This document shows, piece by piece, positions 49,315 to 62,843 of a DNA stretch of 64,000 bases. The DNA is from Pocillopora damicornis (Eukaryota). The position numbers were made by a program, and so were the translations under genes. The notes beneath the pieces were generated by a model. That model made no database searches, was not told the origin of the DNA, and saw nothing but the letters and a program-made list of their open reading frames with translations. The DNA is taken from assembly GCF_003704095.1 (NCBI RefSeq), contig NW_020846508.1:1-64000 (forward strand), read 5' to 3'. The stretch's first letter is position 1. Every line of letters starts with the position of its first letter.

Positions 49315-49731
49315 TTAGTCTGCACTGTTATGGCGTGGAAATGGTGAGGCTGGAAGACTGTGCCTTTTGCTTCGCACGGATAGAGGCTCACTTGAAGAGG
49401 CGAGAGTTTCATCCAAAGAAACAGTTCTGCGGCGGATTGGACGTTTGGTTTGGGTCAACTCTTCAGGGTGTGGTCGTTCTCTATCAGCATTTTTCTGTCC
49501 ATTCCTGTAAACCTGAACTGCGTTGGTCTTTTGAGGCAAACTTTCTCTCCGTTCGAGTATCTGCTTCTTGAAATCTTCCTGTCTTCTGACAATTTGCTTC
49601 AAAACCATCTTCTTCTCTTTATCAAGCTGTTCTAACACAAGCGACAGGTCTTCATCTTGTTTGGTGTTCCTATCGATGGCTTTCCTCATATCAGCTGTAG
49701 GCAAGAGGTAACGGGGCAACTGGTCCTTCAT
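49315..49731 (-). CDS. RRxS-rich coiled-coil family paralogue A (138 aa; truncated relative to B, possible young pseudogene)
   Basis: Starts MKDQLPRYLLPTADMRKAIDRNTKQDEDL... and is nearly identical to 52474-53217. It has TAA where B has TCG, and homology continues past the stop. TATAAAA on - at 49817-49811. Confidence 0.7.
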   Translation of the reverse strand: MKDQLPRYLLPTADMRKAIDRNTKQDEDLSLVLEQLDKEKKMVLKQIVRRQEDFKKQILERRESLPQKTNAVQVYRNGQKNADRERPHPEELTQTKRPIRRRTVSLDETLASSSEPLSVRSKRHSLPASPFPRHNSAD

Positions 49732-52473
49732 GTCTGTACACAGAAATACACTGAGCGCGTTCACGATGTGTGAGGTGTTATTCAATGATACTACAAAGCT
49801 TAGTGCTTGCTTTTATATGGTGAAGATGCATTCTTATTAGCGTATTGTTCAGAAACAAAATATAATAATTCAACTCTCCAATAAAAGGTTTTGTCGGCGC
49901 TTCAGTACTGCATCATCTTTTTGTAGGAATGCAGGTTTATTAAAAAAAAAAAGAGCTTGTTTATGTCGTTTATGATGGAAATGTTGTCACAGATGACTTT
50001 CAGATACCTTTTCCGCAAGCAGTAAATTGGTCAAAGTAAAGCGGTGGAAATTACACTAGAATGATCCTCGACGTATATGTAGTTATCTTATTAATTTTCA
50101 ATGTTATTATCACTAATCTCATTAGCTTTACCTTTGTATTATAAAGCCCTTACTTACTGGAAGCAAGCTAATTTAGTGCTGTTTTAAATATACTGCACAA
50201 TAACTTTGCATGATTTTGTTAACTTAAACTCACTACCTACCAAACTGAACCATTAATATTCCTCCCTGTGACCTGTGCGGCATTTTCGATGAAATATTCC
50301 TGATTATCGAACTACGTATTCAAACGAACAATAACTGACCTCAAACAAAGTCACTTTGACAAATTGTGATGGATGGCATTATGAATGGCTTAGGAATCTA
50401 AATTGGAACTGTCTAGATGCGAGCATAATATTCTAATCATCCCGCCCAGGTATATTAAGGGACTGCCTCGATGTCAGCGTATTCGCAAAGCTTCGTACTC
50501 AAAACGTTTTCTTTCCACATATAACAGCGTATACATAGCTGGCGTTTTGCGGTCTTTTTACTTAGAAAAGCGTTTTCAAAAGCACAGCTTTAGGAGAAAA
50601 TTTTGGCGGGATGGGAATTGACAATGGGCTTAACCGTAGTATTCACGCTCACATTCATTACCCGAATAAAAAATGTAGTCTCTTAAATCTTGATTAAAGA
50701 TTTCAAGTTTTTCACTTCTCTAAATAACTTTATATTGTTCAGAATACTTTGACATGTAATTTTGAAAAGATTTCAAATTCAGTGATACTTAATTGTATTT
50801 GAAAGTTTGAGCTTGAAGCGGTGGATGCAATTTGAAAGAGTTTGTCGCATTTTGCAGTGCACAGTAAGAAAAGTTTTATGCTTATGAACCTGCAACGATG
50901 AAATTAAGCCTAAATTTCAAATAAAACGCGTGACCGTTTAGGAAATTCTATAAAGTTACAGGAAAAGGGATTCAAGATCTCAAGATCATTCCCACAAAAG
51001 GCAAAATTTCCAATAAAGATTAGAACCGATCTTGTGCACTTATTTATTAGCTCAGAGATAACTTATAACCTGTTTGCAGTTAGGTTTTTTCTCTTCACGG
51101 ACAACCGATCTCAGCACCCGCCCCCTACCCGCCCCCTTAAAACATCGCCTCATCGTAAAGAAACAGCGAGTGAGCGCATGAATAATTACTCAGTTATGTC
51201 CTTTAGCGTCCCCGGGGCTTTTAATCCCATTAAGTTAAAATCTTTGTTCTTAACGAGTCATGAAAGAACCTATTTGATTAGTTTCACTCCAACAATTTCA
51301 AGCTGCCCTACAAGAAGTTACTGCTTGGAGCTTCAGAGTGTCGCTCGGATGAGAAACTCTCGCATGCAGATTGAAACCCTGATCCTGAGGAACCAGGAGG
51401 CTCCTCAGTGTCCCGTAACCTGAAATGGATTAATCGGGAAAAACGGCTGGACTCATGATGAGATTATTTCAGTATTTATGTCCTTTGAACTACGGCTGAT
51501 TGTTCAGTTGTGTCAAGTTATCCAGAACCAATCATGATACAGACGATCGGGTGTACTTCTCTCACATACTGTGCACGATTTTCACGCGCTTCATCTCTCG
51601 AGGAGTTTGTTACACGTTTTTCTTTGTAGCAGGCTTTAAACGCTATTGTTTTCATTAAGATTGTGATTTATTCTTCTGTCGTTAATCTCGTAGACGGCAT
51701 TGTTCTTTTAAACGCTATGGAATTGAAAGCGGTATTTTTCTCTATTCAAGGACTACAATCAGGCCGGAGGTACTTACGTGCCTCGAGTGTGCGCGCGGTG
51801 CTCACGCACCCGTTACATCTTACTCCAGGTTTTATACAAGTGAAAATTAAATCTTGCATGGACTCAACTGAGATTTTATTTTATTTTTCGCTCTTTATAT
51901 TCAAGATGGAGTTTCAACGCTGCTGATCTCAGCGGTATGTGAGGCTGAGCGCGTAAAAATTGGACTTAGAGAATATTAGTGTCTATCTCGGTCACCATAC
52001 TTTATTACCCTGTTCCTTTCCAAAACGGTTTGCGAGTGGATGTTCGTTAAATCCATTTCAAGCACTTCGAATTTTGTTTTATTCAGCTGCACGCACACAA
52101 CAAATCTTTTTTTAACTTTTTTCCGAAAATGGAATAGTTTCAAAATGTCGAAAATGAAGCGTTTGTAGAAGGAGGCTGCAAGGGGCGAACTCAGTTGCTT
52201 CATTCAAAATTATTCGTTTGCGGTGTTCAGTTTGGGAAGCAATGTTTGTGCATTTACGGCAATGCAAGAATTTAACTTGGCTATTTGCACAGCCACTTTA
52301 GGCCGATTCCGTTTCGATCTTTCATAAAGAAACAACGTGTGTGTTTAAAAACGCGAAAAGTATCAGAACTTGTCATTCATAACACACTTTAATTTCATTC
52401 AGCTAGTCTAGTCTTATTTACAAAAAAAATCCTCATAGAAAAACTACTGAAAAATACTCGTTCACAAACACGT

Positions 52474-53217
52474 TTACAGTCTCGTTAAGGACTCATTAAT
52501 ATACGTCTTATTTGAAGACACTTCACTGTATTCACTAAGTTTTCGTCTTTGAAGCAATCTTGGATTACTCGTCGTTTGAACAGCGGTCATGGCGGTGACG
52601 TCTGAATGCCTGCGAATCGCATTTTTAAAAGTATTACCCGGTAATTTTGTGCCAGCTTGGTCAACCGTCGTATCTTTAGGGTCTCCCTCTTTGTTTTCTT
52701 GCCAGGATTTCTTTTGGTGAAATATAATGTTGGGCATGGTCGGGACGTTATCCGTCTGTTGACGCGAAGATAGCACAGCTCCTGGCATAGAGGTGAAGTG
52801 GATCGAGTCTGCACTGCTATGGCGTGGAAATGGTGAGGCTGGAAGACTGTGCCTTTTGATTAGCACGGATAGAGGCTCACTGGAAGTGCTGCAGGTTTCA
52901 TCCAAAGAAACAGTTCTGTGGATTGGACGTTTGGTTTGAGTTAACTCTTCAGGGTGTGGTCGTTCTCTATCAGCAGTTTTTTGTCCATTCCCGTAAACCT
53001 GAACTGCGCTGATCTTTTGAGGCAAACTTTCTCTCCGTTTGAGTATCTGCTTCTTGAAATCTTCCTGTCTTCTAACAATTTGCTTCAAAGCCATCTTCTT
53101 CTCCTTGTCAAGCTGTTCTAACACAAGCGACAGGTCTTCATCTTGTTTGGTGTTCCTATCGATGGCTTTCCTCATATCAGCTGTAGGCATGAGGTAACGG
53201 GGCAACTGGTCTTTCAT
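52474..53217 (-). CDS. RRxS-rich coiled-coil family paralogue B (247 aa, intronless)
   Basis: Long ORF with the family N-terminal block LPRYLMPTADMRKAIDRN..QDEDL...LEQLDKEKKMALKQI.RRQEDF...RRESLP. TATAAAA on - at 53313-53307. Confidence 0.85.
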   Translation of the reverse strand: MKDQLPRYLMPTADMRKAIDRNTKQDEDLSLVLEQLDKEKKMALKQIVRRQEDFKKQILKRRESLPQKISAVQVYGNGQKTADRERPHPEELTQTKRPIHRTVSLDETCSTSSEPLSVLIKRHSLPASPFPRHSSADSIHFTSMPGAVLSSRQQTDNVPTMPNIIFHQKKSWQENKEGDPKDTTVDQAGTKLPGNTFKNAIRRHSDVTAMTAVQTTSNPRLLQRRKLSEYSEVSSNKTYINESLTRL

Positions 53218-62145: not shown

Positions 62146-62245
62146 NNNNNNNNNNNNNNNNNNNNNNNNNNNNNNNNNNNNNNNNNNNNNNNNNNNNNNN
62201 NNNNNNNNNNNNNNNNNNNNNNNNNNNNNNNNNNNNNNNNNNNNN
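62146..62245. other. Assembly gap (100 N) covering the start of paralogue F
   Basis: Run of N. Confidence 0.99.
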
Positions 62246-62246
62246 T

Positions 62247-62843
62247 GTAAAAAGAACAAGATTGACTCAAGACATGAAGAAAGCCATTCAAAGGAATGCT
62301 AAACTCGACGAGAACTTCTCAGTCATTGAGCGACAACTAGACAAAGAGAAACTGATGACTTTAAACCAGCTATCAGAGAGGAAAAGAGAATTCATCAGAG
62401 AAAGGGCAAAAAGACGACTAAGCTTGCCAAACATTGAGACGACAGGAACTCGTTCAGTGAGTTTTGGGCGGCAGAAAGCCCCTTCAACTGACGAGGGCAA
62501 GGACGCCCCTATTTGGCGTCAATTTTCTGACAGGCTAAATTTTCATCCAAGATCCTTGAGTCCAAGCAACAAACAGGACCCTGAACTCATCAGTGTGTCT
62601 TCCCTGGGCTCAGTTAAGAAAAAGAGCCATTCAGATAACATTTCCAATGATATTTATGATACTCCTTTCACAGATGAGAACAACGTTTGTAGACTTCCGC
62701 GTCTGACAGATGAGGGAGAAAACGAAAACGTGCGAGCTCAACTGCAAAGTTTCAAGCCTAGAAGGATCTCTATTGCAGCAACTTCGCCATCGCTTCATAT
62801 TTCAAGAAGACTTGGGCGAAGAGCAACATTACCCACTTTATAA
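62247..62843 (+). CDS. RRxS-rich coiled-coil family paralogue F (5' end lost in assembly gap)
   Basis: The frame is open from the gap edge: VKRTRLTQDMKKAIQRNAKLDENFSVIERQLDKEKLMTLNQLSERKREF...RRLSLP...RRISI...RRATLPTL. Confidence 0.82.
   Translation, partial: VKRTRLTQDMKKAIQRNAKLDENFSVIERQLDKEKLMTLNQLSERKREFIRERAKRRLSLPNIETTGTRSVSFGRQKAPSTDEGKDAPIWRQFSDRLNFHPRSLSPSNKQDPELISVSSLGSVKKKSHSDNISNDIYDTPFTDENNVCRLPRLTDEGENENVRAQLQSFKPRRISIAATSPSLHISRRLGRRATLPTL

Follow-up and report, generated by a model that had tools for sequence, protein, structure and literature searches.

The stretch of DNA analysed here, referred to as the window, comprises positions 1-64,000 of contig NW_020846508.1 in the Pocillopora damicornis assembly GCF_003704095.1. 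It contains six open reading frames (ORFs), designated A to F, that share an N-terminal block, with A and B on the minus strand and C to F on the plus strand. This arrangement had been described in an earlier note made from the sequence alone, and it was borne out by the ORF listing and by an alignment in which K, A, N, E, L and F residues of the block are invariant among the six copies. A family profile built from relatives matched all six copies with E values from 4e-20 to 2e-87 and matched nothing else in the 64-kb window. The locus is a tandem cluster in which B, C, D, E and F represent five old subtypes and A is a truncated copy of recent origin; a divergent seventh member (G) lies outside the window.

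Structure predictions divide each protein into a short N-terminal segment, a conserved amphipathic helix of ~52 residues, and a tail that is predicted to be intrinsically disordered. AlphaFold2 models of B and D, computed with the family alignments, contained a single helix of ~52 residues (residues 13-64 of B and 29-81 of D) with predicted local distance difference test (pLDDT) values above 90, while the values in the tail were mostly below 50. The ESM Atlas model of a Desmophyllum member was also poor, with a mean pLDDT of 0.48. Within the helix, N22 and L29 are invariant in an alignment of 35 sequences and M15, K17, A18, I19, K24, Q35, E39, F54 and K56 are conserved in at least 90% of them; in an alignment of 18 sequences that covers all subtypes, N, L and F are invariant. 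A hydrophobic seam is formed by M15-I19-N22-L29-L33-L36-A43-I47-F54, and hydrophobic clusters in the helix recur every ~11-12 residues. The heptad-like spacing proposed earlier is weakly supported, the hydrophobic periodicity at 3.5-3.6 residues being only marginal when compared with shuffled sequences (p 0.06-0.08). No transmembrane or signal sequence was found in the family proteins.

In the tails, four to five basophilic kinase motifs supply almost the only conserved residues, in agreement with the earlier observation that basic-Ser/Thr motifs are what these tails retain. Of 24 tail columns with at least 80% conservation, 21 fall within RRES-L, RR..S, KRHSLP.S, IRRHS and R.L.RRR, and the tail residues that reach at least 90% in the 35 sequences are R101, S104, S124, R202, R203, S205 and R225. 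Even across subtypes whose tails are otherwise unalignable, two Arg residues are invariant and one Arg and one Ser are nearly so. Strict RRx[ST] motifs occur 2-4 times per copy in A to F, compared to the 0.25-0.5 expected from shuffled sequences, which is a 3- to 15-fold excess (p 0.000-0.026). The B-type tail carries the motifs RRES-LP, RRxxS-xxE, KRHS-LP-SP, IRRHS and LLQRRR-T, and the motifs of the D, E and F types include RRxS-xA and Φ-x-RRxT-Φ-H-x-Φ (Φ, hydrophobic residue), the final RRxT site of these three types fitting Φ-x-R-x-x-T-x-x-x-Φ. The R-x-x-S/T-x-P form is present as RRESLP and KRHSLP in A and B, KRYSLP in C, RRESMP in D, and RRLSLP and RRATLP in F, and it is absent from E.

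Each of the B, C, D, E and F types falls into its own well-supported orthologue group in a quick maximum-likelihood tree (IQ-TREE), and Desmophyllum sequences are found in the B, C, D and E groups, with OS493_003557 as the orthologue of E. In the same tree, A and B are a recent duplication within Pocillopora, and G groups with a distant member (L006_c) on long branches, a join that is unsure because long-branch joins in this tree are not trusted. The cluster is also syntenic in other corals: within 20 kb, the Desmophyllum locus L016 holds a D-type gene, a further B-like copy, a C-type gene, two B-type genes and a shattered remnant, another coral (L015) has a D-type gene, a B-like copy, a C-type gene and a B-type gene, and locus L006 has three distant members. 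The subtypes are thus old and have been stably maintained, with copies duplicating or decaying now and then, and the tree does not point to the long birth-and-death evolution that had been suggested from the spread of divergence among the six copies, in which only the A/B pair is recent. Copy D had appeared barely alignable because it is a member of an old, separate subfamily.

The family is under purifying selection. Pairwise ratios of nonsynonymous to synonymous substitution (dN/dS; Nei-Gojobori) between orthologues were 0.19-0.5 overall, 0.04-0.29 in the helix block, which is well below 1, and 0.3-0.5 in the tail, with the caveat that dS is saturated in the distant pairs and that the close pairs have few changes. 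In the comparison of A with B, the helix had a ratio of 0.23 and the tail one of 0.8. Occasional decay of copies was also seen in other corals. A B-type remnant in Desmophyllum pertusum (L016:18663-19419) is spread over three frames and is pseudogene-like, and in a related contig (L001:3262-4005) copy C is split into two ORFs.

To judge by its named relatives, the family has been recorded so far only in stony corals, and its outer limit is not fixed. An exhaustive profile search of 1.84e9 representative proteins returned only 68 relatives, and a word search with B returned 52, none of which has a Pfam domain on record. The named relatives all belong to Scleractinia (Stylophora pistillata, Desmophyllum pertusum and Pocillopora meandrina), and a third word search, started from a more distant clade (P0103, P0107, P0095 and locus L006), yielded no named relatives. 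Scaffolds of Tara Pacific coral metagenomes match the window at 99-100%, and a fragment of D shares 98% identity with an 'unnamed protein product' from Pocillopora meandrina. No Pfam-A model matched above threshold in the six copies, 10 distant relatives or 35 aligned members, and a PDB profile search had 0 matches at E values up to 10. In ESM Atlas searches, both the whole protein and the isolated helix scored below 0.8 and retrieved nothing but generic single helices. The gene identifiers of the Stylophora and Desmophyllum members are not mentioned in the literature and supplements that were searched. The lineage-restricted family without a recognised domain that the earlier note had proposed is therefore real, and it appears to be undescribed.

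In the 234-Mb assembly, the family profile matched only in the cluster, which lies on contig C3143. An origin of the ORFs in transposons or repeats was rejected because the family is confined to this one cluster and is not dispersed; the ORFs also lack Pfam domains. Two public gene models of relatives proved to be faulty. The Stylophora pistillata model AWC38_SpisGene13343 (P0008) fuses the front halves of two tandem paralogues, and the Pocillopora meandrina model (P0147) is a 103-aa fragment of D.

Copies B, C and D are transcribed. RNA contigs from three poly(A)/oligo-dT libraries and one probable RNA run, which come from four studies, were aligned to positions 52300-58290, a segment that spans these three copies; such contigs show the presence of transcripts and not their absence. 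The contigs form separate blocks over B (52387-53220, in 3/4 runs), C (55287-56740) and D (from 57570), and the intergenic DNA has no coverage in the three declared RNA runs. Copy C is covered continuously in four runs, the longest RNA contig being 1464 nt, and within the aligned segment those of C and D run colinear with the genome.

In terms of gene structure, the six copies had been considered intronless. This holds for the coding sequences of the family, each of which is a single exon. As genes, neither A nor B is intronless, since the 5′ untranslated region (5′UTR) of B is spliced and both of its splice sites are kept in A. In run X10, a contig leaves the genome at 53220 and continues with 12 letters that match an exon ending at 53603 (the exon end reads CCGGTTTAGATTG and is followed by GTAAGT). 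In run X1, position 53219 is joined to 53814, and the intron ends CT..AC correspond to GT..AG on the minus strand. The acceptor (TGTGTACAG, followed by AC ATG) lies 2 nt before the start codon of B, and an acceptor-like tract is found at the same place in B-type genes of two other coral genera. The TATA boxes that had been assigned to A and B are not supported, since the TATA-like ATATAAAAGC element of both genes lies inside the 5′UTR intron; no RNA contig was seen to start downstream of this element, within the limit that the contigs show presence and not absence. AP-1/TRE sites, considered as a sign of inducibility, were at chance level (10 found, 10.5 expected).

Run X1 also contains a low-depth contig of 1354 nt that spans the whole spacer between B and C (53814-55099) and splices from 53814 to the coding exon of B at 53219. 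This contig may reflect a long 5′ exon used alternatively by B, or else upstream or antisense transcription. It reaches to ~190 nt from the start of the C transcript, B and C being divergently transcribed.

Table 1. Members of the cluster, the 5′UTR intron of B and the assembly gaps. Positions are those of the window except for G, which is given in contig positions.
Feature	Positions	Strand	Description
Copy A	49315..49731	-	138 aa, truncated paralogue of B; ORF 49315-49785, real start Met at 49731
Copy B	52474..53217	-	247 aa, complete, single coding exon
5′UTR intron of B	53220..53602	-	GT..AG; alternative donor 53814/53813, giving intron 53220-53813
Copy C	55344..56045	+	233 aa; mRNA ~55287 to 56740, unspliced
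Copy D	57660..58485	+	D-type; 275 aa in other colonies; here ORFs 57660-58154 and 58117-58485
Assembly gap 1	58852..58951		Between D stop and E start; true size ~0.79 kb
Copy E	59847..60398	+	183 aa, E-type; RRISFAAF and C-terminal RRATMHQL
Assembly gap 2	62146..62245		Abuts F; true size ~1.15 kb
Copy F	62247..62843	+	198 open codons, F-type, end RRATLPTL; listed ORF 62262-62843; 5′ end in gap
Seventh member G	77533-78381 (C3143; = L014:3533-4381)	-	282 aa, very divergent; 14.7 kb past window end

The individual copies differ in their state of preservation (Table 1). Copy A shares 90% identity with B across 135 codons and keeps the helix together with RRESLP, RRRTVS and KRHSLP, and it ends prematurely after ..NSAD at a TAA where B has TCG. 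Homology to B extends past this stop codon but is eroded by indels, and the C-terminal motifs do not survive. Some other Pocillopora-type sequences (P0004/P0005) have an A form of 187 aa in which the stop is read through into the degenerate tail. In this assembly, copy D lacks 2 bp after 58141, which splits its ORF and puts the remainder of the protein in the +1 frame. Seven other contigs (L001-L005 and L007 among them) have the two bases and an ORF of 275 aa, and the RNA contigs of all 4/4 runs carry an extra CT behind 58141. The two missing bases thus reflect either an error of the assembly or an allele private to it. The conserved start of D is probably the Met at 57696. For E, an identical protein is present in 34 blocks of the sequence collection, and 23 contigs of these were read.

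Both assembly gaps were located by BLAST against gap-free contigs of other colonies (L007/L008). The flanks of gap 1 and gap 2 are colinear with these contigs and in the same orientation, at 97-100% identity, and by their coordinates alone L007/L008 carry ~791 and ~1151 bases in place of the 100 N of each gap. Gap 1 probably lies in or after the 3′UTR of D. The reading frame of F is open from the first base after gap 2, and in the gene tables of the gap-free contigs F is a protein of 202 aa that starts 11 nt inside the gap, in frame with the 198 codons of the window. Gap 2 thus hides the first ~4 codons, the 5′UTR and the promoter of F, and no other coding sequence of the family is broken by either gap. 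In addition, positions 56000-58851 are only 96.8% identical to L007, compared to 100% for positions 58952-62145, and there may be a haplotype switch of the assembly at gap 1.

In the reading that we tentatively favour, and that we consider plausible on the basis of motifs and predicted structure, the cluster proteins would be small disordered substrates of protein kinase A (PKA)-type kinases of the AGC/CaMK class. The helix would anchor the proteins on a partner, or would pair the paralogues as homo- or heterodimers, and phosphorylation of the tail motifs would switch the binding partners of the tail. Capture by 14-3-3 proteins upon phosphorylation would be the most likely read-out because RRESLP and KRHSLP fit the mode-1 14-3-3 consensus, and protein phosphatase 1 (PP1) would be a possible partner of the E-type and of some D-type members that carry RRISF/RRVSF.

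The R-R-x-S/T-Φ consensus of PKA is well established, and the hydrophobic residues at the +1 position in RRESL, KRHSL, RRATL and RRISF match it. Conserved R-R-x-S/T(-Φ) sites in sequence that is predicted to be disordered are present, as would be expected for PKA-type substrates, and so are mode-1-like R-x-x-pS/T-x-P motifs, as would be expected for candidate 14-3-3 clients. PKA signalling and as yet unidentified PKA substrates have been documented in stony-coral sperm (PMC10394420), a context that makes the idea testable and that is not evidence for the cluster proteins themselves.

Several points weigh against the proposed phospho-switch. Basophilic motifs do not separate PKA from PKG, CaMK, AMPK/SIK, PKD or other kinases. 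The helical periodicity of the hydrophobic positions is only marginal, so that a coiled coil is not established. The first tail site is missing in C, which has RREIQS. Finally, the divergent member G keeps the helix pattern K-KAI-xN..E.L and three R-x-x-S-x-P sites and has no RRxS motif.

A bolder version of this proposal, which is possible but which we hold to be doubtful, is that the cluster encodes a helix-anchored phospho-switch family that is the corals' own, has long been kept as a five-subtype cluster, and would couple cyclic AMP (cAMP)/PKA-class signalling to 14-3-3 or PP1. The pH-sensing pathway of soluble adenylyl cyclase (sAC) that is known in corals is an example of a cAMP/PKA-class input.

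It is also conceivable, although we think it unlikely, that the helix is the functional part of the proteins, with a structural, cytoskeletal or membrane/lipid-binding role, and that the basic-Ser/Thr motifs are secondary and represent generic regulation or patches that resemble nuclear localization signals. The helix is the most constrained part (dN/dS 0.04-0.29), it contains the only invariant residues of the 35 sequences (N22 and L29, with F54 above 90%), its hydrophobic clusters recur every ~11-12 residues, and it has stayed constrained in the truncated copy A (0.23) while the tail drifted (0.8). However, the tail motifs keep their positions even between subfamilies that cannot otherwise be aligned, an indication that these motifs have a specific role, and the lack of a transmembrane or signal sequence also speaks against a helix-centred function.

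Another explanation is that the proteins are PP1 regulators or inhibitors comparable to inhibitor-1/DARPP-32 or to the glycogen-targeting subunit GM, in which case they would dock to PP1 through an RVxF-type motif whose binding is switched by PKA phosphorylation. The sequence RRISF is present in E and in its Desmophyllum orthologue P0068, the ends of some D-type and distant members read RRISFQ or KRRVSFQ, and these sequences fit [RK]-x(0,1)-[VI]-x-[FW] with a phosphorylatable Ser inside the motif. GM has RRVSF, and the RRRxT site of the coral proteins is akin to the context of Thr34 in DARPP-32. However, B and C (RRHSD, RRHST), the tail of D in the window (RRISL) and F (RRISI) lack the RVxF-like form, which is therefore not family-wide; the combination of RVxF with a PKA Thr site was likewise not found throughout the family, and Pfam scans of the family gave no match to DARPP-32 or to an inhibitor. 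A role as PP1 regulators is rather improbable.

The resemblance to CCDC190 (PF15768) that had been suggested earlier was not confirmed, and it is very improbable that the family is a far-diverged member of CCDC190 or CFAP95 (PF15139), that is, a ciliary or sperm coiled-coil protein beyond detection by hidden Markov models (HMMs). The likeness to CCDC190 consists of a short, loose charged pattern (R/K-N-A-K..E..L) that was pointed out in the earlier reading. The Pfam model CC190 had no match at E values up to 1-10 in 51 family proteins (the six copies, 10 distant relatives and 35 aligned members), and CCDC190 was rejected as a candidate. In a six-frame search of the genome, CC190 missed the cluster, and its sole match was on another contig (C1870:77702-78049, plus strand; 23.2 bits, model positions 142-251, cut-off 27); this match may mark an exon of the genuine CCDC190-like gene of the coral and has no relation to the cluster. 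For CFAP95, a weak match was obtained to residues 169-242 of B (E 3e-4, 21.1 bits). This candidate was also rejected, as the match does not reach the gathering score of 27 bits, is confined to a low-complexity, disordered stretch of the tail, and was seen in one of the 35 members, with 34/35 having none. The ESM Atlas and PDB profile searches were also empty.

The weakest explanation, that the ORFs are non-functional or decaying (pseudogenes, transposon ORFs or annotation noise), could appeal to the truncation of A, the frameshift of D in this assembly, the shattered extra copy in Desmophyllum, the split C of one related contig and the poor public annotations, but it is hardly credible, and for B to F it is largely refuted, because B, C and D give rise to transcripts, every orthologue pair has a dN/dS below 0.5, the ORFs are intact and syntenic across genera, and the family is a single-locus cluster and not a dispersed repeat.

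If the phospho-switch family proposed above does exist, it would add to signal transduction a layer specific to this lineage, which may be linked to coral-specific physiology such as calcification, symbiosis or gamete activation. Cnidarians commonly have taxon-restricted genes, and the present family is one of many, few of which have a readable logic; here nearly all conserved residues belong either to one helix or to kinase-site motifs. The proteins are therefore a concrete and testable candidate for coral-specific targets of PKA-class kinases, substrates that in corals are largely unidentified. In addition, the family exposes annotation errors in public coral genomes, such as the Stylophora fusion and the Pocillopora meandrina fragment.

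Among known systems, the inhibitor-1/DARPP-32/ARPP proteins resemble the coral proteins in being small, mostly disordered and rich in basic-Ser/Thr sequence, with short conserved kinase and docking motifs. The likeness extends to the RRRxT-type PKA site and, in the E-type and some D-type members, to the RVxF-like RRISF/RRVSF. They differ in that the long N-terminal helix is found only in the coral proteins, and there is no Pfam or HMM match between the two groups.

The CRTC/TORC coactivators offer an architectural analogy and not a homology. The coral proteins have 180-280 aa compared to more than 600 in CRTC/TORC and contain no recognisable transactivation region, and no member matched TORC_N, the profile of the N-terminal CREB-binding domain of CRTC/TORC, in the whole Pfam-A scans. 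Like the coral proteins, CRTC/TORC proteins begin with an N-terminal helix of ~50 residues, which binds a partner, and continue into a long disordered region. In that region, basophilic phosphorylation sites of the AMPK/SIK/PKA class recruit 14-3-3 proteins, and the Φ-x-R-R-x-T-Φ-x-x-Φ site of the D, E and F types fits the AMPK/SIK/CaMK-type consensus.

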